The notes under the pieces are model-generated. The model made no database searches. It was not told where the DNA came from and was given only the letters and a program-made list of their open reading frames with translations. The position numbers and the translations under genes are program-made. From Sminthopsis crassicaudata (lineage: Eukaryota), in contig NC_133619.1 in NCBI RefSeq assembly GCF_048593235.1, positions 396,008,454 to 396,072,453 of the forward strand: DNA of 64,000 nucleotides, in the 5' to 3' direction. Positions 1,540 to 51,449 of the stretch are shown here, piece after piece; position 1 is the stretch's first letter; each line of letters opens with the position of its first letter.

Positions 1540-4500
1540 ACCATTAGGAAAAAAAGAAATCTTAGAACAAAGTTTTTTAAAAGTGGGGAAAAAATACTTA
1601 GAATAACATTAAGGTACCTACTATCAAAAACAAATGATCTGAGCATAGACAATGAAGCAATATCAATACTAAACACATATGCACCAAGTGGTATAGCATC
1701 TAACTTCCTAAAGGAGAAGTTAAGAGAGTTGCAAGAAGAAAAAGACAGCAAAACTATAATAGTGGGAGATCTCAACCTTGCACTCTCAGATTTAGATAAA
1801 TAAAACCACAAAACAAATAAAAAAGAAATTAAAGAGGTAAATAGAATATTAGAAGTATGATAGATCTTTGGAGAAAACTGAATGGTGACAGAAAGGAGTA
1901 TACTTTCTTCTAAGCAGTTCATGGATCCTATACAAAAATTGATCATATGTTAGGACATAAAGATCTCAAAATTAAATGCAGGAAGGCACAAATAGTAAAG
2001 GCTTTCTTTTCAGATCACGATGCAATAAAAACTACATTCACCAAAAAGTTAGGGGTAAATAGACCAAAAAGTAATTGGAAACTAAATAATCTCATCTTAA
2101 AGAATGATTGGGTGAAACAACAAATTATAGACACAATTTATAATTTCACCCAAGATAATGACAATGATGAGACATCATACTAAAATTGGAGGGATGCAGC
2201 CAAATCTGTAATAAGGGGAAATTTTATATCTTTAGAGGCTTACTTGAATAAAATAGAGAAAGAGAAGATCAATGAATTGGGCTTACAACTTTAAAAGCTA
2301 GAAAAAGACCAAATTTAAAAACTCCAATCAAATATTAAACTTGAAATTCTAAAATTAATAATATTGAAAGTAAAAAACTATTGAATTAATAAATAAAACT
2401 AAGAGTTGGTTTTAGGGAAAAAAACAATAAAATAGATAAACCTTTGGTAAATCTGATTAGAAAAAAGAAAATCAAATTGTGTCAAATTCTTAAAAATGAA
2501 AAGGGACAACTTTTCACCAATGAAGAGGAAATTAGAGCAATAAGGAGTTACTTTGCCCAACTTTATGCCAATAAATTTGATAACCTAAGTGAAATGGATG
2601 ACTACCTCCAAAAATGTAAGCTTCCCAGATTAACAGAGGAGGAAGTAAATTGCTTCAATAGTCCCATTTCAGAAAAAGAAATAGAATAAGCTATTAATCA
2701 ACTCGCTAAGAAAAAATCCCCAGGATCAGATAGATTTACATGTGAATTCTACCAAACATTTAAAGAACAATTAACCCCAATGCTATATAAAATATTTGAA
2801 AAAATAGGGAATGAAGGAGTCCTACCAAATTCCTTTTATGACACAGACATGGTACTAATACCTAAACCAGGTAGGTTAAAAACAGAGAAGAAAAATTACA
2901 GACCAATCTCCCTAATAAATATTGATGCTAAAGTCTTAAATAAAATGTTAGCAAAAAGACTACAGAAAATCATCCCCAGGGAATACACCATGACCAAGTA
3001 GGATTTATATCAGGAATGCAGAGCTGGTTCAATATTAGGAAAACTATTGTTATAATTGACCATATCAATAACCAAATTAACAAAAACCATATGATCATCT
3101 CAATAGATGCAGAAAAAGCATTTGATAATCCAACGTCCATTCCTATTAAAAACACTTGAGATAATAGGAATAAATGGACTTTTCCTTAAAATAATCAGTA
3201 GTATCTATTTAAAACCATCAGTAAGCATCATATGTAATGGGGATAAACTGGAACCATTCCCAATAAGATCAGGAGTGAAACAAGGTTGCCCACTATCACT
3301 ATTACTATTCAATATTGTATTAGAAATGCTAGCTTCGACAATGAGAAAGAGATTAAAGGAGTAGGTAATGGGGAAACCAAATTATCACTCTTTGCTGATG
3401 ATATGATGGTATAGTTAGAGAACCCAGAGATTCTACTAAAAAGCTATTAGAAATAATCCACACCTTTAGCAAAGTTGCAGGATACAAAATAAACCCACAT
3501 AAGTCATCATATAAGTTATATATCACTAACAAAATCTAACAGTTACAAAGAGAAATTCCATTTAAAGTAACTACCGATACTATATCTTCCAATCTTCCAA
3601 GAATCTATCTATCTTCCAAGGGAAAAACTGGAACTATATGAGCAAAACTACAAAACACTTTCCTCACAAATAAAGTCAGATCTAACCAATTGGAAAAATA
3701 TTAAATGCTCTTGGATAGGGCGAGCAAATATAATAAAGATGACAATACTACCTAAACTAATCTATTTATTTAGTGCTATACCAATCAGACTCCCAAAAAA
3801 CTATTTTAATGACCTAGAAAAAATAATAACAAAGTTAATATGGAAAAAAAAGGTCAAGAATTTCAAGGGAACTAATGGAAAAAAAATCAAATGAAGATGG
3901 CCTAGCCAAACCAGATCTAAAATTATATTATATTATATCATTTAGTATTGGCTAAGAAATAGACTAGTTGATCAGTGAAATATATTAGGTTCAAAGGACA
4001 AAATAGTCAATAACTTTAATAATCTAGTATTTGACAAACCCAAAGACCCCAGTTTTTGGGATAAGAACTCACTGTTTGACAAAAACTGCTGGGAAAATTG
4101 GAAATTAGTATAGCAGAAACTAGGCATTGACCCACACTTAACACCATACACCAAAATCAGGTCAAAATGTTTTCATGACCTAAGCATAAAGAATGAGATT
4201 ATAAATAAATTAGAAGACCATAGGATAGTTTACCTCTTAGACCTGTGGAAGAGGAAGGAATTTATGACCAAAGAAGAACTAGAGATTATTGATCACAAAA
4301 TAGAAAATTTTGACTGCATCAAATTGAAAAGTTTTTGTACAAACAAAACTAATGCAGACAAGATTAGAAGGGAAGCAATAAACTGGGAAAACATTTTTAT
4401 AGTCAAAGGTTCCGATAAAGGCCTCATCTCCAAAATATACAGAGAATTGACTCTAATTTATAAGAAATCAAGCCATTCTCCAATTGATAAATGGTCAAAG

Positions 4501-5530
4501 GATATGAACAGACAATTCTCAGACGAAGAAATTGAAACTATTTCTAGCCATATGAAAAGATGCTCCAAGTCATTATTAATCAGAGAGATGCAAATTAAGA
4601 CAACTCTGAGATATCACTACACACCTGTCAGATTGGCTAAGATGACAGGAAAAGATAATGATGAATGTTGGAGGGGATGTGGGAAAACTGGGACATTGAT
4701 GCATTGTTGGTGGAGTTGTGAACACATCCAGACATTCTGGAGAGCAATTTGGAACTATGCTCAAAAAGTTATCAAACTGTGCATACCCTTTGAGCCAGCA
4801 GTGTTACTACTGGGCTTATATCCCAAAGAGATTTTAAAGAAGGGAAAGGGACCTGTATGTGCAGGAATGTTTGTGGCAGCCCTCTTTGTAGTGGCCAGAA
4901 ACTGGAAACTGAGTGGATGTCCATCAACTGGAGAATGGCTGAATAAATTGTAGTATATGAATGTTATGGAATATTATTGTTCTGTGAGAAATGATCAGCA
5001 GGATGATTTCAGAAAGGCCTGGAGAGACTTACATGAACTGATGCTAAGTGAAATGAGCAGGACCAAGAGATCATTATATATTTCAAAAACATTACTATAT
5101 GTTGATCAATTCTGATGGATGTGGCCCTCCTCAATAATGAGATGAACCAAATCAGTTCCAATAGAACAATAATCAATTGAACTAGCTACACCCAGCGAAA
5201 GAACTCTGGGAAATGAGTATGAACCATTACATAGAATTCCCAATCCCTCTATTTTTTGTCCGCCTGCATTTTTAATTTCCTTCATAGGTTTTCAAAGTCT
5301 GATTCTTTTTGTACAGCAAAATAACTGTATGGACATGTATACATATATTGTATTTCACAAATACTTTAACATATTTAACGTGTATTGGTCAACCTGCCAT
5401 CTGGGGGAGGGGATGGGGGAAAGAGGGGAAAAATTGGAACAAAAGGTTTTGCAATTGTCAATGCTGAAAAATTACCCATGCATATATCTTGTAAATAAAA
5501 AGGTATAGTTAAAAAAATAAAGAAAAAAAT
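1540..5530 (+). mobile_element. 5'-truncated, inactivated LINE-1 (ORF2 endonuclease, RT, C-terminus, 3' UTR, A-tail)
   Basis: Broken ORF track pieces read as L1 ORF2: ILNTYAPSG..TIIVGDLN (EN), [24 protein letters not shown] (RT), [23 protein letters not shown] (Cys-rich C-terminus). Many stops and frameshifts. AATAAA and A-rich tail at ~5495-5530. Confidence 0.95.
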
Positions 5531-7087
5531 GACCTAGAAAATATAAATCATTTAAGAATCAGACTCCCTGAAAATCATGACCAAATAACAAATTTGCATA
5601 CTATCTTTGGAGAATTCATAAAACAAAACTGCCCAAATCTGTTGAAAGCAAAAAACAAAGTGAAATCTACTGGCTACCTCTTGAATGAAATCACGAATTG
5701 AAAACACTCAGGAATGCAAGAGCCAAAAATTTAGAGCTTCCTCCAAAGGAAAAAAATTGCTGTAATCTAAGGGAACAAGCATTTAATGAGCATCTACTAT
5801 GTGCCAAGTGTTTTACTAATATTATTTCATTTGAGTCTTACAACAATCCTATGAGTTAGGTAGAACTGAGTCAGACAACAGTAAAATGATTTACCTGAGA
5901 TCATTATAGCTAGTAAGTGTCTGAAGCTGGAATTGAACTTAGGACATCTTGACTACAAGTCCTACATTCTATCTCCTGAAGTACCTAGCTGCCCCTAGGA
6001 TTACAATAACATTATGAAAGGAGAGAAATTCTTGGAATATAATATTCTAAAAGACAAAATAAGAAATAACTTGAAAATTCTGAAGGGAAAAAATGAGAAT
6101 TGGACAAAATTCTTGAAAGGCAAATACTACAAACGAGAAATATAGAAAAGTAAATACATTTTAAGCAATTGGAAGGAAGAAATGATGTGCTACATTCTAA
6201 ACAACAACAACTTACTGACTAATTAATTGGTTGAAAAAGGAAATTTCATTGTGCTTAAAAAAGTTGTAGAAAATGAATGATACCAATACTTAATAGATAT
6301 ACATTAAATGATATAGCATCTACGTACTTAAGGGAAAAGCAAATGTATTTTCTTATATGGGATCATCATTCTTCTTTAAGAACTAAAAAAAAGAAAGAAG
6401 AAGTTAAAGATTTGAATAGAATTTTAGAAAGTTAGATATCACTGTCTCTGGTAATTGCTAGAGGGAAGCCAAAAGAAACTCATATAACACCTTTACAAAC
6501 ACTGACCTTGTAAAGTATAAGAACCTAATAAACAATTACAAAAAAGCAGAAATTTTGATCAAGTTCTTTACTAAACACAATCTGATAAAAACTATAACTA
6601 ACAAAAAGCTAATAACATTCAAATTTAGATGATGATTAAATAATTCTAAAGAATTTGGGTCAAACAAATAATATAAATAATAAGCAATTTTAAAGAAAAA
6701 TGATATAAAATAACTTGAAATGCAGTTTAAAAAATAAGAATTTTTTAAAAAATGAATAAACTTAACATACAACAAAAGCAACAAGTAACAGTCATTTGAA
6801 TTTTAAAGTAGACATCCTGAAAATCAACAAAAAATATTAGAAGATAATTTAATTTTTAAAATAGTAACTTCTTTTACAAACTAATAAAATAGATCAATTA
6901 TCAGTCAATTGGTAAAGAGAGCAAATATTTAAATAGAATAGGAAAGTTCACAAGAAATGAAATCTGTTATAAACAAAAATGGCTAATTTTAAATTAAATG
7001 GATGAATATTTGCAAAAACACAATGTTCAAACTAACACAATAATAAATCCAATCTCAGAAAACAGTCTGAATAAAGAATCTCTAAAA
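5531..7087 (+). mobile_element. Older, heavily decayed L1 remnant (ORF1 to ORF2 start), containing a MAR1/MIR SINE at ~5770-6000
   Basis: A-rich L1-like sequence with degenerate ORF1/EN motifs. The CORE-SINE sequence (aatgagcatctactatgtgcc...acctagctgcccc) interrupts it. Confidence 0.6.
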
Positions 7088-8017
7088 CAAATCACTATTG
7101 ATCAGAGAAATGCAAATTAAGACAACTCTGAGATACCACTACACATCTGTCAGATTGGCTAAGATGACAGAAACAAATAATGATGAATGTTGGAGGGGAT
7201 GTGGGAAAACTGGAACACTGATGCATTGTTGGTAGAACTGTGAACAGATCCAGCCATTCTGGAGGGTGATTTGGAACTATGCTCAAAAAGTTATCAAACT
7301 GTGTGTACCCTTTGATCCAGCAGTGCTACTACTGGGCTTATATCCCAAGGAAATACTAAAGAAGGGAAAGGCAGCTCTTTTTTTTTTTTTTTTTTTTTTG
7401 TGGCAGCTCTTTTTGTAGTGGCTAGAAACTGGAAAATGAATGGATGCCCATCAATTGGAGAATGGTTGGGTGAATTATGGTATATGAATGCTATAGAATA
7501 TTATTGTTCTGTAAGAAATGACCAGCAGGATGAATACAGAGAGGCTTGGAGAGACTTACATCAACTGATGCTGAGTGAAATGAGCAGGACCAGGAGATCA
7601 TTATACACTTCAACAACAACACTGTATGAGGATGTATTTTGATGGAAGTGGATATCTTCAACATAGAGAAGATCTAATCCAGTTCCAATTGATCAATGAT
7701 GGACAGAATCAGCTACACCCAGAGAAGGAACACTGGGAAATGAGTGTAAACTGTTTGCATTTTTTGTTTTTCATCCCAGGTTATTTTTACCGTCCGAATC
7801 CAATTCTTCCTTTGCTGCAACAACATGTATCAGATCCAGGATATACTATAACATATTTAATATGTATGGGAATGTCTGCCATCTAGGGGAGGGGGTGGAG
7901 AGAATGAGGGGAAAATTCGGAACTCAAGTGAGTACAAGGGATAATGTTGTAAAAAATTACCTATGCATATGTACTATCAAAAAATGTTATAATTATAAAA
8001 TTAATAAAAATTTTAAA
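7088..8017 (+). mobile_element. Younger L1 3' fragment with 15-bp target-site duplication
   Basis: ORF2 C-terminal sequence ([15 protein letters not shown]-type), 3' UTR and A-tail. Flanked by AAAGAATCTCTAAAA at 7073-7087 and 8018-8032. Confidence 0.92.
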
Positions 8018-10150: not shown

Positions 10151-10374
10151 AGCAATCCATAATCTAGCATCTAGTAGGTGCTTTACAAATGCTTGTCGAT
10201 TAAGTGATTAATGGTAGATCAGGTGGTAAATTCAACTTTTGCTCCACTTCCCACTAGTAACCCAAAATATAGACAAAGATTCCCAGAGAAATTCCTAGAG
10301 AGAGATTGTCTCCTCAAATCTGAGGTCTAATAGACAATTAAGACAAAAAAAAATTAAAAACAAAGACTTGGAGC

Positions 10375-10380
10375 TTTATT
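10375..10380 (-). terminator. Poly(A) signal (AATAAA) of the unannotated minus-strand gene
   Basis: tttatt on + at 10375-10380, 480 nt past the stop at 10860. A U-rich element follows on the minus strand. Confidence 0.6.
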
Positions 10381-10859
10381 AAAGTTCACCTTTGACATTC
10401 ATATAATTGTTAAAAACAAGCTACAGCACAGCCTTAATCAATCATGGCTGAGACTGTGTATACTAAAGTTCACTCCCTCCCCTCCTCCAAGAGTAACAAG
10501 TGTTGAATGTAATTGCTCCATATGCTAAAGATTAGGTCTCACCCCCTTCAACAGGTACTAGAACCTGAATACCCTCCTTAACTAAACTAGTATTAATTTG
10601 GATTTACTAAAATGACTAACCTAGTAGGAGTCAGGGAGTTGGCTTCTTATAGATACTTCTGAATACTTGGGACTGCTCTCAAGTGCCAGGTCCTACCTAC
10701 TCTAACATGTCTGCTGGCCTGGAAAAAATGAATCATCTTCCAAATATTCTGCAAAATTCATTAAGATTGTAATCACTTTCTGGATTTGACCACTGGCATC
10801 CGGACTTCCTGATAAGAGGGCATCTGGGCTGCACTTGGTCTCTCTCATTCTGACTATAG

Positions 10860-12274
10860 TCAAATGTGATCATCTGGTTGATCAGACTTGGGGGGCATTC
10901 CAGTCTCATCTTCTTTGTCAGCCATTTGGATATTTGAAAAGAGCTTTGAGTAAACTCTCTCTTTTATGATAGATTTCACCAGCTTTTTAAATATTTCCAT
11001 AATCTCTTGGAGGATACAGTGGTTGTCTTCTTGTTCAAAGTATCGTTTATAATTCTCCAAGGAGTCGGGGTCCATGTACTCCAGACAAAGCCAAAAGATT
11101 CTAATCCCTGCTTTACTACAATTAATATCTGGCTTTTCATGGTCTGTCTGTTTTCTAAAGAGAATTTCATCATCCATTGCTACTGCTCTTGCTAGTGCTT
11201 TCATTCTTGCTTCTGCGGCTTTCATTTTTGCTTCTGTATCTGGATCTATTTCTTCATCTGCTGCTGCTACTGCTGCTGCTGCTGCATCTAGTGCTGCTGC
11301 TGCATCTGCTGTTACATCTGCTGCTGCTGCTACATCTGCTGCTGCTGCTACATCTGCTGTTATATCTGCTGCTGCTACTGCAGATGACAGTGCCCTTATT
11401 GTAGCTGTATCTGCTGTCACTACCAATATTGCGGCTTCTGCTGCTGCCATTGTCATAGCTGTTTCTTCTGCTACTATTCTAGCTGTTGTAGCTGTTTCTA
11501 TTGCTGCTGATGTTGATGCCCCTGTTGTTGCTGTTTCAATCGATGTTGCTGCTGCTGTTGCAGCTCCATGATCTTCTTTGTCTAAGATATGGGCACGAAT
11601 GAGTTCTGCTGGGTCAGCCTGCAACATCCTCTGTATTTCTTTATTGCTAGGAATGCCTTTCTCGGGCTCCCTCAACATCAAGACCAATTGAATTGCCCAA
11701 GTTTGCTGTTCTTCAAGGTAGTTCAGATAGTTTTTGCCGACTTCTATAGCCTTTGTAAGGGCTCTCATCGACTTTTTGCTCTTTTGTCCAATTGGACCCA
11801 GTTTTGGACTTGGAGGTCTGGCTGGCACTTGAGTTTCAGTTGAAGTTATAGGCTGATGGCTCTCTTCCCTTTTATAAGTACTTGGACTTGAGTGAATCTT
11901 CAAACAGTGACTGCACACACGCCGAAAAACCTTTTCAAGACGAGTTGAATTTGTGTCGGTTCTTGGCTTCTGTGTTTTGACCTGTGGTGGGAACTGGTAA
12001 TATGGTGCTTGGCAGAAACTCCAAGAATCTGGTAGAGAATCAAAGGAGTATAAACAATATTTTTCAACAACTTGTCTCAACTCCTTTAAATCCAACCCTC
12101 GACAAGCTGCTGGAGGAATTTTCCATGTAACTTGTGGTAGGAGCTCCCGATGTTCTGGCACCCCACAATTATGGAACAATGAGACAACAGCTAGAGAGCG
12201 CTGCCTTGTGTCTTGAGCATTTTGGACAGGAACATGAGTTCTCTGTGGCAATTCGGTTGAGGAAGTGGTAAGTC
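10860..12274 (-). CDS. Terminal coding exon (exon B) of an unrecognised gene; Cys-containing N-part, Ala/Asp-rich tract, helical C-terminal domain
   Basis: Stop-free frame of >1.4 kb in an AT-rich TE field. The ORF-track start (12251) is TTG, not ATG. The frame stays open up to a strong acceptor ctctttacttttttctccag|GA at 12275/12274, with a phase-1 entry (GA CTT ACC..). Stop at 10860-10862. Confidence 0.75.
11255..11570 (-). repeat. GCA-rich coding low-complexity tract (Ala/Thr/Asp) with an 18-nt DVAAAA sub-repeat
   Basis: Plus strand shows tgctgctgc runs and repeated tacatctgctgctgctgc at ~11313-11350. Confidence 0.85.
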
Positions 12275-12359
12275 CTGGAGAAAAAAGTAAAGAGGTTTAT
12301 TTTAACCAGTTCTGATATCTTGGCCAAATATATCTTAGCCTTTTTTTTTTTTTTAACCC

Positions 12360-13640
12360 CATTATAGACTTCTTACTGCTTCCTCATTCATAGATGATCT
12401 CATTATCCCAAAGAGAGTATAAAAGAGGGGAAAGAACCCACATGTCCAAAAATATTTGTAGCAGCTTTCTATGGTGGCAAAGAACTGGAAATTGGGCAGA
12501 TGTCCATCAATTGGAGAATGACTGAATAAGTTATGGTATATGAATATAATGGAATATTTTTGTTCTATAAGAAATGATGAGCTGGCTGATTTCCAAAAAG
12601 TCTTGGAAAGTCTTACATGAACTGATACGGAGTGAAGTGAGCAGAATCAAGAGAACATTGTATAAATAAGAGCAAGATTAAGTGATAATTAACTATGATA
12701 GATTTAGCTCTTCTCAGCAACACAGTGATCTAAGACAATTCCAATAGATTTGGGATGGAAAATGCCATCTGCCTCCAGAGAGAAAACTGTGGAGACTGAA
12801 TATAGATCAAAGCATATTATTTTCACCTTTTTTGTGTTTGCTTTGTCTCACTTTTTTCCCTTTTGTTCTGATTTTTCTTTCACATGACAAATGTGAAAAT
12901 ATGTTTAAAATTATTATACATGTTTAATCTATAGCAAAATACTTGCTGTCTTTGTGAGGGGATAGTTAAGAAAGAGAAAAAGAAAAATTTGGAATATAAA
13001 ATCTTAACCAAAAAAATGATGATGGTGTTTTCACCTTTTTGATTGTTTGCTTGCTTTCTTACTTTCTCTTTTTTTTTTCTTTTTCATCTAATTTTTTTGT
13101 GCATCATGATAGATGTACAAATGTGTGCAAAGGAACTGCACATGTTTAGCATGTATTTGATTGCTTTCTGCCTAGGAGGGTGTGGGGAGAGGTAAGGGAG
13201 AAAGATTTGGAACTCTGGATTTTGCAGGAGTGGGTATCTTTGCATACATTTTGAAAATAGCTATTATTTAAAAACCCACTAATTTGGAAATATTAAAAAT
13301 TACAAGTGATATTCATAAAATTGACTGTAACAAATAAAACTAGAAGTTGGTTCTATGAAAAAAAAAACTTAAAAATGAATGATGAAAACTATCAGTACTT
13401 GTCATTGATACTATGGAAATTTTTTAAAGTTCCAAGGCAATCCCAATAAACTTCAGATAGAAAATGTCATCTGCATCCAGAAAAAGAGCTATGAAGATTG
13501 AAATCAACACATGGTATGTTTCACTTATTTTTTTTTCCTCTCCCTTGGTTTTTCCCTTTTGTTCTGATCTCTCCCTTCCAATATGATTCAGAAAGCAATG
13601 TGTACTAAAAATGAATAAATAAATTTTAAAAAGAGAAATG
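12360..13640 (+). mobile_element. Cluster of older L1 3'-end fragments
   Basis: ttgtagcagctttctatggtggcaaagaactggaaa..gtccatcaattggagaatg ORF2-end motif, followed by several 3' UTR/G-tract/A-tail remnants. Confidence 0.8.
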
Positions 13641-14833
13641 ATTCCAGGAACTCAGTACCAATCTTAAAATATCAGACCCAGTGATACCCTTTGCTTGAGA
13701 ACTTCCTTTGCTTGTAATACCTTTAACATTAATTCAAAGGTGTATCTCCCTATATATGTTAGGGCTCATGAGGCCTGCTCTTAAAAGGAAGAAAAATAAA
13801 TATGTATCCAAATAGACTATAATACAAGGCAGAATATGATAAATGAATAAAGGGAAAAGAAAGTTGGAACAAAACCTTTGTTCCATAGATAACAAACAAG
13901 CTTTGCTGTCTTTGGGAGAGGAACCAGTGAAATATTTGTATCTTTCTTTGGCTTATCAGTAGTTGCTTGGAATCTCAGAGTTGGCAGAGCCATTAATTCC
14001 ATCCTATAACTAAATAAGGATCTCCTACCACATAGCAGACAAGTGATCATTCAGCTCCCAGGCTACTTTTAAATAACTCCAGTTGCTGTAAAGAGTTACT
14101 TCCTGAAATCTAAATTGTTATCTTTATACTTTTAGGTACAGAAGACATCTGGGAGGCACTGGCAACAGTGTAATAGGCTAAGATTCAGAAAGATCAGAGT
14201 TCAATTCTGTTCTCAAATATTTTATAGCTGTGTGACTCTGGACAAGTTATTTATGATGATTTTTTACCTAATTAAAAAAATTATCAATCTGGGAGGGGAA
14301 GACTCAGGGTTTCTTTGCTATTTATACATTTCACTTTGAACCATCAGGGCCCATTAAGTCTCACTTATTCATCTGTAAAAGAGAGATAATTAATTATAGC
14401 ACCTCCCTCTCAGAGTGAGAATAAAATTAAATCATATTTATAAAGCACTTATTAGAGTTCCAGGAACACAGTAGGTGGTTAATACATGCTTGATTCCTTT
14501 CTTTATCTACTACTTCTAGTTATGCCCTCTAACTTTCTTATCTTTTCCTCCATTATGTCATGGTAGGAATGTGCTAGTATTCAACTGAATGAGAAGAGAG
14601 TGAAATATATACAAAATATATTTTAAAGTTTAAAGCATTATTAACATTTTCTCTTACTTTGTAACACTTTCTTAACTCTAGACAAACAAAAGAATCATAA
14701 ATTAAATCCTAATCTTGGTGTTTGTAGATTTCTAATATGTAAATGGTCACACTAAAAATTTAACAATTGACTCTTGTGATCTCATTGTCACTAGTTCTAA
14801 GACATTCTTGATCATTAGAATTTTAAATTGATA

Positions 14834-15335
14834 CATGAACTGATGCTGAGTGAAATGAGCAGGACCAGGAAATCGTTGTATACTTCAACAACAATACTAT
14901 ATGATGATCAATTCTGATGGACGTGGCCCTCTTCAACAAGATAAAACAAATTAGTTCCAAAAGAACAGCAATGATTCGAACCAGCAACACCCAGCGAAAG
15001 AACTCTGGGAAATAAGTGTGAACCACTACATAGAATTCCCAATCCCTCTATTTTTGTCCGCCTGCATTTTTTATTTCCCTCACAGGTTAATTGTACACTA
15101 TTTCAAGGTCCAATTCTTCTTGTGCAGCAAAATAATTGTATTGACATGTATACATATATTGTATTTAACATATACTTTAACATATTTACCATGTAATGGT
15201 CTACCTGCCATCTGGGGGTGGGAATAGAAGAAAAGTGGGGAAAAATTGGAACAAAAGGTTTTGCAATTGTCAATGCTGAAAAATTACTCATGCATATATC
15301 TTGTAAATAAAAGGCTATAATAAAAAATTTTTAAA
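14834..15335 (+). mobile_element. L1 3' UTR fragment
   Basis: Near-identical to 5030-5520 (acatgaactgatgctgagtgaaatgagcagg ... aataaaaggctataataaaaaa). Confidence 0.9.
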
Positions 15336-16169
15336 AATTTAAGTTGAACTAAATTCACTTCTATATTTCCTTACAACAATTCTCAGAAATTTCCAGATTC
15401 TGCTCAAACATGCTGAATGACAGACAATTAATTTATTGTTTGGCCAAGTAGTCCATTTCTTTTACAGAGAGTTTTAATAGAAAGTTCTTTGACTCATTGA
15501 GCCAAAGCCTGTCTTCACATAACTACCATCCATATTCCCCAATTCTGTCTTCTAGACCTCTATGAAATAAGTCTATTCCTAATACATGACAAATTTTTCA
15601 ATCTAATTTTTAAAATGAATCTTTTCAAATTTAACTTAATTTTAAGTCTTGATCCAAAGACTTTAACCCTTTTTGCTAAGGTAGACCTCTCTTTGTGTAT
15701 TCTTGATCCATCCTTTGTCTTTTCCATGGGATTGGCTCCTTGGTTAAACTCTTACCAGTCCTTCATCTTTCCCTATCTACCATTTCCTTTCCTTCTGTCT
15801 ATTGTTCTTTGTCCCTAGTTCTCAAAGAGGACCATAATATCAGGGAGGTGATGTCTTGACAGGAAAATTAATTGGATTTACTTGAGGGAGCTGTGCAAAA
15901 TTACCAACCTTGTTTTTTTCCTCTGGAACCATCTGAATGCATAGCAAGATATAGATTAGGATGATTGGAGATGGTCCTGGATACAGTGGGAATTCTTGGT
16001 CTTTTTCTCCTCTGCTGTCTATAAAGATGTTCAAGTCTCCCTTTTCAATTGCTCTCCCCCTTCCTCAAAAAATCTTAAGAAACCCTACTAATATACAAAT
16101 GAGTATCTTCTTTTTGGCAGGAAAACGTGAAAAAAAATCTGTCCGTAGTCCTTAACACACTTCTTCACT

Positions 16170-17510
16170 TTTTTAAGCTTTTTCCAATCTGATTTCCAAC
16201 CTAACTATTCTTTCCAAAGTCACTAATGACTTCTTTGCCATATCTAATGGTCTTGTCCTCAATCTCATTGTTCTTGATTTCTTCAGTATTTGATATTGTT
16301 AGTCACTTCTAGTACTTGATACTCTCCTCTGAATTTTTTGCAACTTAGTTCTGTTCTACTTATCTGATCATTCTTTTCAGCCTCTTTTTTCTAACCTCAT
16401 TCTAAGGGTATTCCCCAAGGCTTTGTCCCCTTCTCTTTTTCCTTTAAACTTTTGCTTGTGGAATTTATCAACTCCCATGAGTTTAATGATCAGATGATTA
16501 TATCTATCTCTAGTCTTCTATTCCTCCATCATTAGCTACTTATGGAACATTTTGTATTTAATGTCCCATAGGTATCCCAAACCCCTTAAGTCCCAAAGAG
16601 GACTCAGCCTATTTCCTTAAAAAAACATGACCCTTCTTCTGAGCATCTCCCTTTCTGTCAGGGATACTATTGCCTTCTGGCCCCCAGGTTCTTAACTTCA
16701 ATTGATTCTGCACTCTCCTCACTCCATGTCTAATTAATTTAACAAATCTCTCTATCAGGGAAAAAAGTGTTCTGCCAGGCACACTTTTAAAATTTAATCT
16801 ACTTTATTTAACATTTTTTCTATCACTTAAATCTAGTCAATCAAAACAATGTACCTACAGTTCCACTTCAGTCTATTGTTTGCAATTCTTAGGGTGGCAG
16901 GAACTACAAAGGTTTTAAATGGTCACTGACACTATGCATTTATTAAATGTCTCTATATGCCAGTCACTGTACTAAACGTTAAAAATACAAAAAAAAAAAA
17001 AAATGGGCAAAAAGCACTTCCTCCCCTCAAGGAACTAATTAATAGTCTAAAGGGGAAGAGAACATGCAAACAATTACATACAAACAAGAAATGTACAGGA
17101 TGTCTTGCAAAACATTGGCATTAAGAAGGGTCTGGAAAGGCTTCCTAGAGAAGGTAGGATTTCAGTTTGAATTTGAAGGGAGCTAGAGAAGCTGGGAAGT
17201 AGAGCTAAGAAAGAGCATTCCAGATATGGAAGAATATCCAAAGTGGAGAGATGGAAGATCTTATTGGAAGGACAGTAAGGATGCCAAAGAATGTGGAGGA
17301 AAGAAAGATGTATAAAAAACTAGAAAAATGAAGGGAGAGATAGGGAAGAATGTCAGAGGGTTCTGAATTTGATGCTGGGAATAAGGAACCACTGGAGTTC
17401 ATTGGGGGATCAGATCTGTATTTAGGAAGATCTGTTTGGCAGCTGAGTGGAGGATAAAGTGGAGGAAGAAGCGACTTAATGAAAACCCTATCCATTATTT
17501 GAGGCCTACT
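16170..17510. mobile_element. Ancient LINE-2 fragments in both orientations
   Basis: Pyrimidine-rich L2 RT-like text (ccaaagtcactaatgacttc, ccaagggctttgtcccc) and a complementary purine-rich L2 3' part (atgcatttattaaatgtctct..). Confidence 0.6.
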
Positions 17511-17859
17511 CAAATACCATCCCCTCCAAAAAGCCTGATCTGATTACTCTACATAAATATTTCCCCTTTCTGAACTCCTACAGAATCCTGCCTATACTTC
17601 TCTTAGGGATATGGGTTATACTTCATAAATAATGCATTTGGTCAAAAACCTCAAGCATGATCTTTATATCGACTGGCTTAGGTCTCAAGGGACTTCTCAT
17701 AAAATCAGACTGATTCATATTTCTATAATAGGCTTAGGGCACGCCCAGATCACCTCACAGAGTGGCAGCTGCCTGGGAGGTTCCAGGAACCCACCTCTGG
17801 GAGAAGGTGATCTCTTTTCATTGACTTTGTAGCTGGAAGAGACCGATCTTCAGAATTAC

Positions 17860-20340
17860 CAGATGAGCATATTCTGTCTTCCCCCACTCTCATCTCTCCT
17901 TTTCCCATCTCTCTCTTTCCTCCTCTTTTCCTCTTTCCCCCCTCCTCCTTCTTCCCCTCTCTTCATTCTCTAGTGTCCAGAAAAGGTCAGGATCCTGTTG
18001 CTCCATAGCATAGATGCCATGAACTGGGTGAAGAAAAGTTCCCCATCCTTCTTTTAACTGTGTCCCCAATAACTAGGATCTGAGTTTTGGTTTTGGTTAG
18101 TTAAGGTTGGTTTTCAGGTCTAGATTAAAGTAGTGGAAACCCTGAGCTTGGTGGCTTTGGAGGCAAGATTCCAGGTTAAATGTTGCAACCAGCATGTTTA
18201 ACATATATTGAATTACTTGCCTACTAGGAGAGGGTATAGGGGGAAGAGAGGGAGAAAAAATTTGGAACACAAGATTTTGCAAGAGTATGTTGAAAACTAT
18301 CTGCATATATTTTGAAAATAAAAGGCTATTATTTTAAAATTAAAGGTAAAAAAAAAAAAAGGATCAAAGTTTAAAAAATGATATAGCCACATCAACAGGA
18401 AACCCTGGGAAGTTAGGGTGCCTGGGAGGGTGCCTGGAACTTGAGTCATGAGGGGTTTTGGACTTGGAATTTAGTGGGATAATTTATATGGGTGGTGGAT
18501 TAAACTGTGAACCTTATCCCTACTCCTTCCCAAAGACTGAGAAACAAGGGAAGGGGATTATGCTATCTGGAGAAGGGGAGTTGGATACATTCTACCTTAG
18601 AAGTAATATTCTTTTGTAAAAGTTAAATGGTTAAAAGGAATTGGAATTGAAAAGCCCTTAAAATTTGGGGAGATAACCTCAATGGGGAGGCTGGAGTGAA
18701 TGGCAAGGACTAGAAATCCCCAAACTCCTTTAAGGGTACCAGAGAATCCTAAAAAGGAGCATAATATAAGATACCTGGTCATCAACCACTAGGTGTCTGG
18801 GTAGACTATTATATTCTCAACTATAGTCTCTCCTTCAAACAATTTCACATGTAGGTCTTTACAGAAAAAGTAAAAAGGAGTCCTTGAAGTCCTGGGCAAA
18901 CTGGTACTTATTGAATATAGGTTATCCTACCAAAGAACAAAAACTGTGGGATAAAAAGACTGAAAGAAATCTACAAAAGTCAAGATAACTCTTTAACTCT
19001 CTTTAGGCCAAGAAGGGAAATGTAGGCTCCCCAAAGAGAGGAGAACATTTGGGATTATCAGGAAAATCAGCCTCTTATCTTTCAGTGAGCCTAACCTCAG
19101 CTATAGACCAATACGGTCCCCCAGACCACATCATCAATTTTACTTCTGTGTGGCAAAAAGTTTTCAAAACCCAAGGGCCAGGGAACCAGATTACAATGTA
19201 GTCAGAAAATTTTTAATAAAAGAAATTAAAATACAACATAACCTAGACAATGGCAATTTTTGGTTTTCTAAATCAACATATGGCCTAACAGAATCAGTTT
19301 CCAAATTTTATCCCTTTCACATTTCAGGATTAGAAGTGTGGGTCTATACCCCCAAACCTTTAATCTGGAAAATCCCTATGAAATTTTTTAGTCCTTCTTT
19401 CATATCAGAGAATTTTAGTATTGAATGATATAATGTGTGGATATCAATCAGTACTATTGGTATATTTTATGTATTTCTGAGTTTCTAAACTTTTTTCTGT
19501 GTCATCTGTTGGCTTTCAAATGTTTGCAGCTTCTTCAAAACTTCTAAAAATTCCCATTTAATTCCTTATGCAAACCAGCAACATATCAAAACTGATGAGA
19601 AAATCATGATGTAGAAAGAATAACTGTATTTGAGTTTGATACTTCTGCTTTAGGTTTATTTTGTTACTCCTAAAGTCAAGTTTTACCCAAAAGAATATTT
19701 TTTCACTTGAAGTTGCTAAGATTCAACCCTCTTTCCATTGGATCAACACAGTACCCAGCACATAGTAGGTACTTAATAAACACTTGTTGACTTGATCTAT
19801 ACAATCATCATAATTCATAGTACAGTGAAAGGTCAAGATTTTTGCTTCTGTATTATGATAGGTTTCTTTAGTTTCTCCCATATTCCAAGGTCATATAGTC
19901 ATCGTTATTCTCTTTATTCTACCAATGCTCCTATCTCTTGATTCCTTCCCCAAAAGTCCTGAGCAAATTCCTTCCTTACTCTGCAGTTGCTTCTTCATGA
20001 CTAATAGGATCAGGGCTGAAGGAGTTTGATAGGGTTGAGGTGCCCTCCTCCCCAGTCTTGCCCCAATACTGAGAGGCCCAAGTTTATTCTCTAGTTGATA
20101 CTTCCTTCAGCCCTCTATCTCAGTTTAACTCGTTAAGAGGCAGAATCCCACTACCACATACACACTTCCTTCCTTTCCTCTTTTCCTGATTGGTGTTAAT
20201 CTTGCTGACAGCCACTTTGAAGCATGATACACTGGTCTGTCTTATGGGACCCCAGAACTATTCCTAAAGTCCCAACAAATAGGGCAGGCAATTAACTTGG
20301 GCTGCAGAGATTCTCAAGGAGTCTATTTTAGGGGGCTGTG
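17860..20340. mobile_element. Possible decayed ERV/LTR-derived sequence, with an L1 3' UTR piece at ~18170-18360
   Basis: Composition and motifs look retroviral rather than LINE/SINE. No intact gag/pol motif could be read. Confidence 0.25.
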
Positions 20341-21080
20341 AACTGGATGAGGGAAAGTTACATCTTTTTTAGATATAATTGATTTACTTTGTAAATCTAT
20401 GGAATTTGTTTAAAAAGAGAAATGATTCATAGACTTTCACAAAATTGGCAAAAGAGTCTATGACATAAGAAAATTTTGTGAACTTACATTATGAAGTGGC
20501 CTGCAAATCAGAGAAATAAGGCATTTTTCTGTAGAGGTGGATTTGGAGGGAAGAATCTTTCTCAACATTTGACTATATAATTGTCCTATTCAGTTCATTA
20601 ATTTGCTTGATGAGAACAAATTGAATGGGACCATTCTTTTTATGTTCCCCTATAGGTGACCTACTATGTGTCAGATACCATGGATACAAAGATAAAAACA
20701 AAATAATAAAAAGTCACTTTCATCCCCATATTGTGTTGTAATTTTTTGCTTTGTTCTGTTCATTTTCATCAGATTTTATCCAGATAGAGGTGTTTGGAGA
20801 TAGGAAAGCCTAGACAAAAAGTCACCAAATGTGGTTTACTTCAGGTCTGCCTAATTTATCTAAAGATAATTCTAGGCCTATTTGGACCCCACTCCACTTC
20901 TAAAGCCCACTTGTAATTATTCCTCCCCCTAATACAGGTCTTTAAAAAGATTCATAAATGCAAATCTCTAGTCCCCAAGTTAATTTAACAGGACTGGAAG
21001 TTACTTTGTTACTACTGCTTCCTCTTTTTCCTCATCCTCCTTCCCTTTCCCCTAAACCTTTTCCTTCTTCTCCTCCTCAC

Positions 21081-22032
21081 CTTCATCGTTTTCTTTCCCA
21101 TGTCTAGTTTCAGGTCCAGATTTGGATGAAGATTTAGGCAGATCTTTAGGCTCAGGTGGACGCTTAGAAGGACCAGAAGGCTCAGGTCCAGATTTGGATG
21201 AAGATTTAGGCAGATCTTTAGGCTCAGGTGGACGCTTAGAAGGACCAGAAGGCTCAGGTCCAGATTTGGATGAAGATTTAGGCAGATCTTTAGGCTCAGG
21301 TGGACGCTTAGAAGGACCCGAAGGCTGAGGCCCAGATTTGGATGAAGATTTAGGCAGATCTTTAGGCTCAGGTGGACGCTTAGAAGGACCCGAAGGCTGA
21401 GGCCCAGATTTGGATGAAGATTTAGGCAGATCTTTAGGCTCAGGTGGACGCTTAGAAGGACCAGAAGGCTGAGGCCCAGATTTGGATGAAGATTTAGGCA
21501 GATCTTTAGGCTCAGGTGGACGCTTAGAAGGACCCGAAGGCTGAGGTCCAGATTTGGATGAAGATTTAGGCAGATCTTTAGGCTCAGGTGGACGCTTAGA
21601 AGGACCCGAAGGCTGAGGTCCAGGTTTGGATGAAGATTTAGGCAGATCTCTAGGCTCAGGTGGACGCTTAGAAGGACCCGAAGGCTGAGGTCCAGATTTG
21701 GATGAAGATTTAGGCAGATCTTTAGGCTCAGGTGGACGCTTAGAAGGACCCGAAGGCTGAGGTCCAGATTTGGATGAAGATTTAGGCAGATCTTTAGGCT
21801 CAGGTGGACGCTTAGAAGGACCCGAAGGCTGAGGTCCAGATTTGGATGAAGATTTAGGCAGATCTTTAGGTTCAGGTGAACAATTAAAAGGACATGAAGA
21901 TTTAGGCATACATGTGGGTTCAAGTCCTAGTTCAGGTGCAGGGTTAGGTATATGTCCAGGTTCAGGTTCAGGTTGGGGCTCATTTGGAACACTGGCCTCA
22001 CTTCTAGCTTTTTTCTTCTTGCCTTTGGACAT
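21081..22032 (-). CDS. First coding exon (exon A) of the unrecognised gene; basic N-terminus plus Pro/Ser/Lys tandem repeats
   Basis: ATG at 22032 (gacATGt) gives MSKGKKKKAR. The frame is open for 952 nt to a consensus donor GAAG|gtgagg at 21081/21080. This is phase 1, matching the acceptor at 12274. If unspliced, the ORF stops at 21052 (326 aa). Confidence 0.7.
21112..21876 (-). repeat. 72-bp coding minisatellite, ~10.5 copies (KDLPKSSSKSGPQPSGPSKRPPEP)
   Basis: Period 72 is directly visible (tttggatgaagatttagg at 21121, 21193, ...). Copies differ by only a few substitutions. Confidence 0.97.
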
Positions 22033-22508
22033 GTCTTACCTATAAACGGGACCTCAAACACCTCAAGGTAGAAGAATTGGCAAGGAGAGGTTGGAGAAAA
22101 GAGATAATAAAAACAGATAAAATTCTAATATCAAGATACGACTAAGAAAACTGTATGCTTGCCTGCTCTGCTGACTTATAAAGATTTGACCTCTCAACTA
22201 TCCCTTTACCAGATCATCTGGCAATTGATGCTGTTAATTTGTGGTTAATTCATCTCACCCTTGTGGCTAATTAGTCTCACCCTTGTTGTGCCTTTTCTGA
22301 GTTGGTGAATACCCTTTCTTTTCTGACCACCTTTTCTTTCCTGGCCTCCCTCTTGGTCCTGTTGATTATCTTGGGATGGAATGGGGAGCAATAGGGAAAT
22401 GAAGACAAAAGAGATCTCAGCAATCACAACAACCCTAATTGGGTTGATTCTCTTCCTCTCCTTTCTACCCCTAAATTGGGAAGGAAACATCTTTTCACAA
22501 GGAAATTT

Positions 22509-22558: not shown

Positions 22559-23368
22559 TTTATAATATTATCCCTTGTATTCATTTTTCCAAATTACCCC
22601 CCCTCCCTTATTCCCTCCCCCCGACGACAGGCAATACCATACATTTTACATGTGTTACAATATAGTCTAAGTACAATACATGTGTGTGAATATCATTTTC
22701 TTGTTGCACAATAAACATTAGAATCCGAAGGTACATGCAACCTGGGCAGACAGATATTAGTGCTAACAATTTACATTCCCCTCCCAGTGTTTCTTCTCTG
22801 GGTGTATCTACCTCTGTCCATCATTGATCAACCGGAAGTGAGTTGGATCTTCTTTATGTTGAAGATTTCCACTTCCATCAGAATACATCCTCATACAGTA
22901 TCGTTGTTGAAGTATACAGTGATCTTCTGGTTCTGCTCATTTCACTCAGCATCAGTTGATTTAAGTCTCTCCAACCCTCTCTGTATTCCTCCTGCTGGTC
23001 ATTTCTTACTGAGCAATAATATTCCATAACTTTCATATACCACAATTTACCCAACCATTCTCCAACTGATGGACATCCATTCATCTTCCAGTTTCTAGCT
23101 ACAACAAAAAGAGCTGCCACAAACATTTTGGCACATATATGTCTCTTTCCGCTCTTTAGTATTTCTTTGGGATATAATCCCAGTAGTAGCGCTGCTGGGT
23201 CAAAGGGTATGCACAGTTTGATAACTTTTTGGGCATAATTCCAGATTGCTCTCCAGAATGGCTGGATTCTTTCACAACTCCACCAGCAATGTATTAGTGT
23301 CCCAATTTCCCCACATCCCCTCCAACATTTGTCATTATTTGTTCCTGTCATCTTAGCCAATCTGACAG
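22509..23368 (-). mobile_element. Young 5'-truncated L1 with 15-bp TSD
   Basis: ORF 22878..23360 is an intact L1 ORF2 C-terminus (CWRGCGEIGTLIHCWW). T-rich tail at 22505-22530. TTCACAAGGAAATTT at 22494-22508 and 23369-23383. Confidence 0.95.
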
Positions 23369-23994: not shown

Positions 23995-24440
23995 CTGCCA
24001 TCATTTGGAACTATGCCCAAAAGGTTATCAAGCTGTGCATAGCCTTTGATCCAGCAGTCTCATTACTGGGCTTGTATCACAAAGAGATCATAAAAAAGGA
24101 AAGGAACCCACATGTGCAAAAATGTTTGTGGCAGCCCTTTCTGTAGTGGCTAGAAACTGGAAATTGAGTGGATTCCCACAAGGTGGAGAATGGCTGAATA
24201 AGTTATGGTATATTAATGTGATGGAATATTATTGTTGTGTAAGAAAAAATCAGCAGGATGATTCAGAAAAGCCTGGAGAGACTTACATGAATTGATATTA
24301 AGTGAACAGAACCAAGAGAACACTGTACACGGCAACAAAAAGATTATGTGATGATCAATTCTGATGGACTTGGCTCTTTCCAACAATTAGGTGATTCAGG
24401 CCAATTCCAATAGACTTGTAATAGAGAGAGCCATCTGCAT
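23995..24440 (+). mobile_element. L1 ORF2-end fragment
   Basis: tggaactatgcccaaaaggttatcaagctgtgcat.. homologous to 4750-5170. Confidence 0.85.
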
Positions 24441-26584: not shown

Positions 26585-27399
26585 AAACTTGTGGTATATT
26601 AATTTAATGGAATATTGCTGGATTATGCATAATAAATAATGACTAATGAATACAGAAAAACATGGGAAGTCACGTCAGGAGGTATTACAGCTTGGGACTT
26701 GGTGTCAGGAAGACCTAAGTTCAAGATACCTTGGGCGAATCACTTAAAAATAAAATAAAATAAAAAACCTTCTAGCTTCAGTTTCCCCAACTGTAAACGA
26801 TATATATAGTATATATGAAAAGCACTTATAATTATTATTATATGATTCGTGTAAAGTGAAGTATGCAGAATCACGATATCTAATACTGAGGCTAGCATTT
26901 ATATAGTTTCTCGTAACGCTTCCAAAGCACTGTACACATTCACTGGATCCTCACAAGTGCTGGGAAGTAGACATTATCCGCTTTATTTTATAGAAGAGGA
27001 AACTGAGTCAGGCCTAAGTTAAGCACCTAGCTCAGTGTCCCTAAGCTCGTCCTGAAGGGGCGTGTGAACTCCAGGCTTCCGGACTGGATGTTTTGCGACT
27101 CGTTTTGGAACGGCAAAATTTAGCACGTAGCCGGCCTTATCTATACATGTTTAATAAATGTTTATTGATCGCTGCGCCACTCAGCGGGCAGAAAAGCAAT
27201 AGACGCGATGACTGCAAGAAGATCAAAGAATAGGGCAATGGAAACTGAAGCCTGCAAAATTCTATAACGGCCACGCTCGACCTCACCGAAGGGCTGTAAG
27301 GAAGCAGCTTCAGTTCTTGGACGGGCAGCTTGTGGTATATTAAGGGACAAAAAGGAATTAGCAGGAGGAAGGCGCCAGAATAAACTAAGAGGGACCGGG

Positions 27400-28450
27400 G
27401 AAAGTGAGGTTTTAGGTGGGGCTTCAAGGGGGGCAGTGAGCAGAGAAGCTACCCTTCCCCTCCGATTCCTCTAACATTTTTCATATTTCCTTTGCTGCTT
27501 CTACTTTCTTTGTGCAGAGGCAGTTTCGTGCGGAGCGTGGGACTTGGGAACTTTCGTTCTGTACGAGCCCGGGTAATCCATGAGACGTCTACACATGTCT
27601 CTGGAGAACGAAGCGCTAGAGTCAGTGACCTCCGAAATCCCCTGCAGATCCGGGCCCTTTGTCAGCCCCTCCCCCGCTACGGCTCGGGTGTTCTTCAGCA
27701 CCTCCCAAAGTACACTACGTATACTCATTAGTATAAAAGGCGTTTCCCAAGCGCCCCTGAGGGGTGCAGGAGGAGCAGCCCAGGGCTACACTCTAAAGGC
27801 CTAGGCTTTCGAATCCTCTGACTACGAGCAGGACTTTAGAACACGTCATTTCCTCCCACCAGGTCCCGGTTTTTCGCTTCGGTAAGAGAGGAGGGGATCC
27901 AACTCGATTCGGATTGGATAGAAATTGTCCCCGCCTCTCCTCGAAGACTCGGGGAGCGCGTCCGCGCACCCGCAGTAGGAGGAAGGCTGCGCAGTCCGCT
28001 CCGCCGGAAGGGGTGGGGACGCGACAGAGTCGGAGGTCGCGGGGCGTGGCCTCATAGGCGACGACGGCTGCGGAGGCGCCCGGAGGGAGAGCGGTAGTAA
28101 GAGCAATGGCGCCAGCGCATCGCTGCCCGCTGTGCCGCCAGAGCTTTTTCTCCGGCCGCGGACACGTCTATAGCCATAAACACCAGCGACAGCTGAAGGC
28201 GGCTCTGGAGCGGTTGCTGCCCCAGGTCAGGCCGCGCGCCGGGGATTTGGGGGCGGGGGAGGTGCGGAAGAGTCGGGACCCGGTTCGGGGGTGTCTGGGC
28301 GGATGAACTTGAGGGGAAGATAAGGAGCTTCTAAGGTATTCTGGACGAGGAGGTGGGGAGAAGTTAGGGATTTTGTAAAAGTGAGCATTTAAGGGCAAAA
28401 AATGACGAGGAGCTCGGATGCTGGGATGTCGGGATAGGAAGCTGAACTGT
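27400..28450. promoter_or_regulatory. CpG island promoter of CENATAC
   Basis: Sharp rise in GC and CpG around exon 1. GC-box (ggggcgtggc) near 28040. Confidence 0.85.
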
Positions 28451-36623: not shown

Positions 36624-40517
<3,894 letters not shown>

Positions 40518-40579
40518 GGTGAGGCTTCAGGAGCGCCTGCTGCTACCGCCTCCAAGCTAAGATGTCCGACAGAAAGGAA

Positions 40580-41088
40580 GTAAGTGGTATGGGTGAGCGG
40601 TGAAACTCCGTCTGTCTCTAAGTGCTTCCGGGACTAAACCGAAGGAACTTAAACGGAGTGGACTACAATTCCCAGTAGACACTCACACTCTACAAGAGAA
40701 AGTTCAAGAGACGTGAACTACGACTCCCAAGATGCATTATATCTAACGCAACGCTAAACAGCCACTACTATGATAACGCTGGGGGAATCTGACGAAACTG
40801 CGCTTACGTCTCTATACCCTCTTCGAGGAACTCGAGGTTAAAAAACGATAAAAAGCTAACCTTGAACTTATTATTTAACCCTTGTGGGAACAATAAAATA
40901 GGGATTGGAGAAGCATCAGTAAATATGAGTTAGACAGTTTTTCCTCCCCCTATAACCTCCACAACACAGAATGGACTGGTCGAGGATCACGTGTTCCAGG
41001 TTTCCTGGGTGGAACAACCAGAGGGGGAGGGAGAGACTTTTAAGGACTAGAGTAGTGCTCGAAACCGGAAACAGTCGCTGATGGAGCA
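40580..41088. promoter_or_regulatory. RPS25/TRAPPC4 bidirectional promoter with two ZNF143/THAP11-type motifs
   Basis: Head-to-head ATGs 572 nt apart. ACTACAATTCCCAG at 40662-40675, ACTACGACTCCCAAGATGC at 40717-40735, ETS-like cttccgg (40625) and ccggaa (~41065), E-box cacgtg (~40988). Confidence 0.8.
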
Positions 41089-45240: not shown

Positions 45241-50720
<5,480 letters not shown>

Positions 50721-50783
50721 TCACACACAAACTGCTGAGTTGGGGCTTTCAGTCTGTCTCCGGTGCTGGGCTCCCCGGTTCCC

Positions 50784-50813
50784 TTTATAGCCACTGTCTG
50801 GGCAATCATTAAG
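50784..50813 (-). promoter_or_regulatory. TATA box and HNF1-like site of the proximal SLC37A4 promoter
   Basis: tttata (TATAAA on minus) at 50784-50789. GGCAATCATTAAG at 50801-50813 matches GTTAATNATTAAC at 10/13. The human G6PT promoter is HNF1alpha-dependent. Confidence 0.6.
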
Positions 50814-51449
50814 CTCTGGGGCGGCTCCCTGGGAACCCAGTGTCCTGGAGGAAAAGGGAAAACAGTGGAGAAAGCGAAGAGAGGGGCCAGTGCTCTGCAT
50901 GGCGCTCTGTGCTCCAAGGTGCTGGGGAGCCGCCTCTCCCCCCCACCGGGACCTCTTCCGTCTGCAGCCCTCCTGCTTGGGAATCCAGCTGTGATTAAAA
51001 GCACAGCCTAATTACCCTTGCCTGCCAGAGGACCCGGGGGAGCCTGTGAGTCCCAGGAAAGCGAGTGAGCAGGGTGTCCCCAGCTTCCCCCTCCCTCATG
51101 TGCTCCCCTCCCCCAGCGCTCACAGAAAGCCGCTGCCTCCGTGCCTCCGGACCCTCACCACTCTCCCACCGTCGCTTTCACACCTAAGCGCTAATCCGGG
51201 GAGCTCCCTGGGCAGCGGCCAGAAACGTGGAGGCCACACCGGGCCTGGGATCAACTGACTGAGCGCTTCCAGCCTAACCTGCGGGAGTCTGGAGCAAAGC
51301 ACTTCTCTGCCGGGCTTCCTCGTCTTCCGTAAACGGGGGCAATAGTCCGGGCACTAACTGCCCACCCACGGCCGCTGTCAGGGAAGTGTCCACTAACTCT
51401 TACAACGCTGTATAGAAACAGCCGTTATTCCTCCACTTCCCACCGTCCT

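Follow-up and report, generated by a model that had tools for sequence, protein, structure and literature searches.

The stretch of DNA studied here, 64,000 nt of the Sminthopsis crassicaudata genome (contig NC_133619.1, positions 396,008,454 to 396,072,453 of the forward strand; hereafter the window), raises the question of whether two long minus-strand frames to the left of CENATAC are the exons of one protein-coding gene and, if so, of what kind of gene. A preliminary description, made from the letters of the window, had joined both frames into a single, unrecognised gene. After our analysis, they very probably represent a real, marsupial-restricted protein-coding gene with a two-coding-exon structure.

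Joining the two frames in phase 1 resulted in a coding sequence of 2367 nt, i.e., 788 aa plus stop, without any internal stop and with the junction residues ..ENDE-G-LTTSSTELPQR... Coding exon A (21081–22032, minus strand, 952 nt, phase 1) starts with an ATG at 22032, two codons downstream of an in-frame stop, encodes a basic N-terminus (MSKGKKKKAR) followed by Pro/Ser/Lys-rich 24-aa repeats, and ends with the donor GAAG/GTGAGG at 21081. Coding exon B (10860–12274, minus strand, 1415 nt including the stop at 10860–10862) begins at the acceptor TTTTTTCTCCAG/GA at 12274, and the single intron between them (12275–21080, 8806 nt) is filled with old repeats, including L1 (LINE-1) pieces antisense to the gene. 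Coordinates, phase, frame, junction residues, and exon lengths given in the preliminary description were all reproduced, as was its polyadenylation signal c. 480 nt downstream, since the 3' untranslated region (UTR; 10355–10859, minus strand) revealed an AATAAA at 10380–10375, 479 nt past the stop and followed by a T-run.

Exon B and exon A are also the two longest stop-free frames of the window (478 and 327 codons, respectively), the longest open reading frame (ORF) called inside the 8.8-kb intron having 102 aa. Most of exon A, however, consists of a 72-nt tandem array that is open in two frames, and about 330 nt of exon B are GCN-rich and open on the opposite strand, too. Because such tandem and GCN-rich repeats are stop-free, part of the ORF length is mechanical, and ORF length alone is weaker evidence than it seems. 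Two further ORFs were rejected as products of the repeats: the one at 21012–21923 (minus strand, 303 aa) arises from reading the 72-nt array in its second open frame, and the one at 11074–11571 (plus strand, 165 aa) from reading the GCN-rich segment in antisense. In neither case is the frame conserved.

A phmmer scan (HMMER) of 1.84 billion (1.84e9) representative proteins with exon B resulted in only four matches at E ≤ 1e-3, all of them marsupial-type sequences, namely Tasmanian devil XP_031817193 (E 4.6e-101), koala LOC110207205/XP_020840464 (E 8.2e-69; 45% identity over exon B), tammar wallaby XP_072469120 (E 3.6e-43), and the UniParc sequence P0004 (E 6e-11). The first 300 aa of exon B showed 62% identity to the devil protein (E 2e-103), and exon A matched the devil model as well. 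The gene is thus less unrecognised than had been claimed, as RefSeq automatic models already exist in devil, koala, and tammar, though under uninformative names such as 'NACA muscle-specific form-like' (devil), 'titin-like' (koala, UniRef), or 'uncharacterized'. The proposal of a marsupial- or lineage-specific gene fared better, with no relative found outside these four sequences. Word-based and region-restricted protein searches with P0004 and the koala C-terminus revealed no further relatives; a word-based protein search with the whole of exon B returned the devil only and missed koala, being swamped by Ala-rich words. These were single-sequence protein searches, with eutherian and monotreme genomic DNA lying outside them, and within this scope the gene stands as a putative orphan restricted to marsupial-type sequences. 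It is common to dasyurids and diprotodonts at least, and it would be common to all living marsupials if P0004 comes from an opossum, as the age of its identifier leads us to suspect.

The koala model revealed exactly two coding exons, a MSKGKKKK start, a 7.75-kb intron, and a 581-aa frame, so that the proposed two-exon structure was found again with its exact junction, phase, and start, while the devil model, which joins the homologues of exons A and B at the identical residue (..GKEDNE-G-PSTSPTELPQR..), agreed in junction and phase. Neither of these complete orthologous models contains an intervening coding exon, which had been a reservation of the preliminary description. Window, devil, and koala share the donor AAG/GTGAGG (AAA/GTGAGG in koala), the acceptor CTCCAG/, and phase 1, and both devil genomic DNA (L001 16502) and the koala model preserve the start and the first c. 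45 aa of exon A. At the level of the locus, the window is colinear with that of the devil over 2863–36446, which places CENATAC at c. 28.1–36.4 kb on the plus strand, and the intron is colinear with those of devil (90–92.5% identity) and koala (71–78%). In devil and koala, too, the gene lying divergently upstream is CCDC84/CENATAC, as shown by its match to Pfam PF14968. Sequence similarity, the two-exon phase-1 structure, and the position divergent to CCDC84/CENATAC therefore all place the gene in the orthologue group of LOC110207205.

Though similarly organized, the orthologues revealed some differences. Koala LOC110207205 (581 aa) shares with the gene of the window the MSKGKKKK start, the two coding exons, the phase-1 junction residue, and the divergent CCDC84, but it harbors 42 nt × 4.1 repeats, almost no Ala-rich spacer, and about 70 further C-terminal residues. 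These residues are also present in the wallaby, while window and devil share an in-frame stop, after which the homologous DNA continues as 3' UTR. Devil XP_031817193 (689 aa) has the same junction and the same 72-nt repeat unit, with the C-terminal domain and the stop present in devil genomic DNA, but it differs in upstream start exons, an early end, and a repeat of 3.7 rather than 10.9 copies. The model begins with two exons beside CENATAC (L001:10001–11996, corresponding to c. 27020–27830 of the window), whose translation looks non-coding, and enters the 72-nt repeat via an internal acceptor (L001 16652), bypassing the conserved ATG at L001 16502, although devil DNA retains the homologous ATG exon start (MPKNKKKKARTEAS..). 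These upstream exons might represent either an artefact of the model or an alternative 5' UTR driven by a bidirectional CENATAC promoter. At the other end, the devil assembly (GCA_902635505.1, L001:26886–26990) carries two compensating frameshifts and stops within a 730-nt AAGAEAADDE array, because of which XP_031817193 ends early and misses the C-terminal domain and the true stop (L001 c. 27711). Beyond the array, the frame resumes through a C-terminal domain 76% identical to that of the window and stops at the same place. Both the start and the end of the RefSeq model in devil are probably incorrect.

Transcription was assessed as the share of sampled sequence words that are present in each sequencing run, the kinds of runs being guessed ('RNA?') and their tissues coded. 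Runs X1 and X11 (62 million letters each) contained 0.99 of the words of 10400–12300, which covers exon B and the 3' UTR, and runs X12, X13, and X2–X5 contained 0.58–0.93, while the share was 0.00 in many other runs of the same organism and 0.21 in one run from a second, related organism. Since a run of 62 million letters could not cover a locus of a mammalian genome by chance, this points to an abundant, sample-restricted RNA, and since the query 10400–12300 was present at 0.99, the 3' UTR is part of the transcript. With a second query (20131–22032), which is half exon A and half adjacent intron, X1, X11, X12, and X13 all revealed 0.20; exon A makes up 0.31 of the distinct 31-mers of this query, and the pattern fits exon A without the intron, i.e., spliced RNA. 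Overall, the gene is strongly expressed, though in a tissue-restricted manner.

Nowhere is the locus better conserved than in the c. 300 nt before the ATG, which show 82% identity to koala compared to 71–78% in the introns and 67% in exon B. This predicted promoter or 5' UTR region (22033–22330, minus strand) showed a mean column identity of 89% in an alignment of window, devil, and koala and a TATA-like box (TTTATAAG) at 22182–22175, c. 148 nt before the ATG. It is CpG-poor (GC content 0.38, CpG observed/expected ratio 0.11), while the inferred 5' end of CENATAC at 27300–28300 is a CpG island (GC content 0.59, CpG observed/expected ratio 0.86), and for this reason the region suits a gene that has a separate, tissue-specific promoter instead of using that of CENATAC. 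Transcription of the minus strand would then start from a TATA-type promoter of its own, located about 6 kb from the CENATAC CpG island and divergent to it. The upstream block 22033–22330 also displays the invariant AT-rich motifs TAATTAGCC, CACAAATTAACAGCA, and CAATTGCCAG, which resemble homeodomain- or SOX-type sites.

The deduced product has 788 aa, about 85 kDa, and an isoelectric point (pI) of 9.0. From the N- to the C-terminus, it would consist of a Lys-rich basic start, the Pro/Ser/Lys-rich 24-aa repeats, a Cys/His-containing middle region, an acidic Ala-rich spacer, and a helical C-terminal domain. The N-terminal half, at pI 10, is basic and contains 27% Pro and 22% Ser+Thr, the spacer is acidic (pI 4) with 40% Ala, and the C-terminal domain is acidic as well (pI 5.2). 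This last domain (10863–11234, minus strand; ..RIFWLCLEYM..FKKLVKSIIKERVYSKLFSNIQMADKEDETG..), whose 76% amino acid identity to devil genomic DNA is given above, is the most constrained part of the coding sequence. In the middle region, CxxCxKxH (C120, C123, K125, and H127 of exon B) and, upstream of it, FHxCG..H and ACRGL are conserved across five family members, and the conserved Cys and His residues hint at a putative metal binding. Modelling with AlphaFold2 (AF2) on a shallow alignment resulted in a pLDDT of 44.5 and mostly low-confidence helices, only the C-terminal ones reaching 70–76, and the product appears largely disordered. Neither a signal peptide nor a hydrophobic segment fit for a membrane was found in its sequence.

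Such a protein would act inside the cell, possibly in the nucleus given its KKKK start. As the likeliest function, we tentatively suggest that of an intracellular, possibly nuclear, germline protein of testis or spermatid, which might evolve under sexual selection or conflict. The germline is our guess because this class most often combines a CpG-poor tissue-specific promoter, lineage restriction, changes in repeat number, and a ratio of nonsynonymous to synonymous divergence (dN/dS) of 1 or more. The gene could instead be just as real and marsupial-restricted but somatic, coding for an epithelial or cornified-cell, mammary, placental, or immune-related structural protein, which we regard as possible though not likely. 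The evidence for a real gene applies equally to such a protein; an expression limited to few samples whose tissues are coded and Pro/Ser/Lys repeats with changing copy number would suit it as well, and Pro-rich tandem repeats together with positive selection are also typical of host-environment or mother-young interfaces. A product lacking a signal peptide and a membrane segment is, however, not a secreted milk or antimicrobial protein, the locus adjoins CENATAC outside the known epidermal or milk gene clusters, and nothing speaks positively for any somatic tissue.

Whichever tissue uses it, the question of whether the long frames are needed as a protein was addressed by comparison with devil, a close relative of the window species, and with koala. 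Introns and flanks of window and devil are 90–93% identical, while the coding parts are less so, the N part of exon B having 84.8% identity and the C-terminal domain 86.6%. The 397 non-repeat codons revealed dS 0.12 and dN 0.168 against devil (dN/dS 1.4, 95% confidence interval (CI) 0.97–2.1), and the N part of exon B dS 0.12 and dN 0.20 (dN/dS 1.67, 95% CI 1.08–2.9). The raw nonsynonymous divergence was 0.150 compared to 0.0875 in introns (z = 6.4). Over all regions, koala yielded dS 0.601 and dN 0.402 with the window (dN/dS 0.67, 95% CI 0.50–0.88) and dS 0.636 and dN 0.376 with devil (dN/dS 0.59, 95% CI 0.46–0.75). For the C-terminal domain only, the values against koala were dS 0.81–0.82, dN 0.39–0.42, and dN/dS 0.48–0.52, with an upper CI bound below 0.9. 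Indels between window and devil were multiples of three in 21 of 101 cases in introns and flanks, while those in the non-repeat coding parts measured 3, 6, 12, and 15 nt plus one 1+5 pair, all net in-frame. Under random substitution at the observed level, the chance that no stop arises in the 1233 non-repeat nt is about 0.03 per lineage and about 0.001 for both, and koala retains the ORF at c. 33% nucleotide divergence. The restriction to in-frame indels, the retained koala ORF, and the dN/dS below 1 against koala are sound evidence of coding selection. Of the earlier argument that stop-free frames of this length imply selection, the selection was therefore upheld, while the reasoning from ORF length is weak here, as repeats account for much of that length.

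Differences between the species were detected in the two coding repeat arrays, which grow and shrink in a lineage-specific manner. The tandem array in exon A (21112–21893, minus strand) was resolved by Tandem Repeats Finder into 10.9 copies of 72 nt with 97% identity (unit PPEPKDLPKSSSKSGPQPSGPSKR) and has two open frames; the devil harbors 3.7 copies of the same unit and the koala 4.1 copies of a different unit of 42 nt. The Ala/Thr/Asp-rich low-complexity segment in exon B (11237–11567, minus strand; acidic, pI c. 4, open on both strands) encodes a spacer of about 110 aa in the window, about 240 aa in the devil, where it is the 730-nt AAGAEAADDE array, and about 30 aa in koala.

The same comparison bears on a third explanation, that of a transcribed RNA gene or a decaying gene whose long frames are not, or not any more, needed as a protein in dasyurids and survive through stop-free repeats and the recent split from devil. 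Its attraction lies in a dN/dS against devil that is not below 1, in a coding identity (85–87%) below that of the introns, in the large share of ORF length contributed by repeats open in more than one frame, in the c. 70-aa C-terminal tail lost in dasyurids but kept by koala and wallaby, and in the stops within the repeat of the devil assembly. A divergence faster than that of introns (z = 6.4) is, however, not expected from relaxation alone, every coding indel located outside the arrays is net in-frame compared to 21% in introns, the chance of about 0.001 for 1233 stop-free non-repeat nt in both lineages is small, start codon, splice phase, and stop position are common to window and devil, and koala keeps a 581-aa frame with a dN/dS of about 0.6, so that decay or an RNA gene is improbable. 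The protein appears to be kept as a protein and yet to change very fast, above the neutral rate in its middle region among dasyurids, and the gene is best read as being under fast, partly adaptive evolution.

Since the names of the RefSeq and UniRef entries suggest known families, domains were searched for in the window protein and its relatives. Pfam revealed nothing consistent in the five family members, a profile search against the PDB gave no match, a feature search in the ESM Atlas scored no higher than 0.55, a value without meaning that was reached with unrelated bacterial clusters, and Foldseek, run on the poor AF2 model (pLDDT 44.5), matched nothing in the PDB below E 1.2. An identity with NACA/skNAC, as in the name of the devil model, was rejected, as there is no Pfam family and so no NAC or UBA domain, leaving a Pro-rich composition only; titin, the name of the koala entry in UniRef, was rejected likewise, as there is no Pfam family and neither an immunoglobulin nor a fibronectin-III domain, leaving a P/E/K-rich, PEVK-like composition only. 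A domesticated retrotransposon gag gene (PNMA/Ty3-like), for which the helical C-terminal part of the low-confidence AF2 model might speak, is highly improbable and was rejected on the sequence evidence, as Pfam revealed no PNMA, Retrotrans_gag, or other gag family in five family members at E up to 10, the HMMER matches in 1.84e9 proteins included neither gag nor PNMA proteins, and the PDB profile search was empty. Foldseek found nothing better than E 1.2, but the model behind it is too poor to decide on a capsid fold.

Several observations weigh against a spliced, functional, germline-expressed gene as favoured here. Runs X4 and X5 contain 0.61–0.63 of the query of exon A and intron, and so intronic sequence, too, which could be pre-mRNA or could mean that these libraries are not poly(A) RNA. 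The junction 21081^12274 in this genome fits the orthologous models and the word content, from which it is deduced rather than from spliced reads, and expression in testis would be pure inference, the tissues of the runs being coded. The upstream exons of the devil model suggest that the true 5' end or the isoforms may differ, and the frameshifts and stops in the devil array could be real damage rather than an assembly error. A dN/dS of 1 or more between close relatives also looks like loss of constraint, and the predicted structure, at a pLDDT of 44.5, is uninformative on the fold.

Apart from the gene itself, the intron and the remainder of the window were inspected. At least two L1-related pieces in the intron (12404–12720 and 14832–15336) lie on the plus strand, antisense to the gene, as deduced by comparison with the L1 ORF2 C-terminal ORF present in the window itself; similarity to L1 ORF2 at the protein level was found only in the first piece, for the C-terminal part at 12404–12533 (plus strand), and Pfam detected no L1 or reverse transcriptase domain in ten intron ORFs. 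The antisense orientation noted in the preliminary description is thus seen in both pieces, but two are too few to speak of a bias. L1 ORF2 C-terminal fragments (..CWRGCG..HCWWSCE..FW..IW..) also flank the gene at 4114–4950, 7086–7477, and 24003–24205 on the plus strand and at 23043–23366 on the minus strand, the last of them (23.0–23.4 kb) sharing the orientation of the gene and lying c. 1 kb before its ATG. Rfam revealed nothing in the window, and a run of Ns was found at 29853–30020. To the right of CENATAC, two GC-rich stretches, 40000–42000 (GC content 0.53, CpG observed/expected ratio 0.65) and 50000–52500 (GC content 0.62, CpG observed/expected ratio 0.54), carry spurious-looking Arg/Gly/Pro-rich ORFs; these stretches probably represent promoters or first exons belonging to the genes that follow.

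Altogether, this is a clean, well-bounded marsupial-restricted gene with a conserved promoter, a protein that diverges faster than its own introns, and two labile coding arrays. In kind, it is not surprising, since orphan genes that evolve fast are common and the copies of relatives had already been picked up by automatic annotation. New here is the description of the gene: models pre-exist in three relatives, and a literature search on LOC110207205 and on marsupial-specific testis genes found no description of it. The window species should carry the 788-aa model at this locus, and the names 'NACA-like' and 'titin-like' are misleading. Genes of this type may contribute to reproduction or to other aspects of lineage-specific biology in marsupials, and laboratory dasyurid and opossum models now permit knock-outs. 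A bolder reading would have the gene born in the marsupial stem beside CENATAC, subject to recurrent positive selection and repeat turnover, and encoding a germline (sperm or spermatid) protein of a new kind, whose Cys/His motif and C-terminal helical domain are both novel and which plays a role in dasyurid sperm competition or reproductive isolation; taken as a whole, this is rather unlikely.

The known systems that come closest are the rapidly evolving, taxonomically restricted reproductive genes of mammals, which typically combine a CpG-poor tissue-specific promoter, a disordered repeat-rich product, copy-number turnover, and a dN/dS of 1 or more. The gene of the window differs from them in being fairly old and shared by dasyurids and diprotodonts instead of species-specific. 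In taxonomic restriction, promoter, disordered repeats, turnover of copies, and dN/dS, the two are alike.

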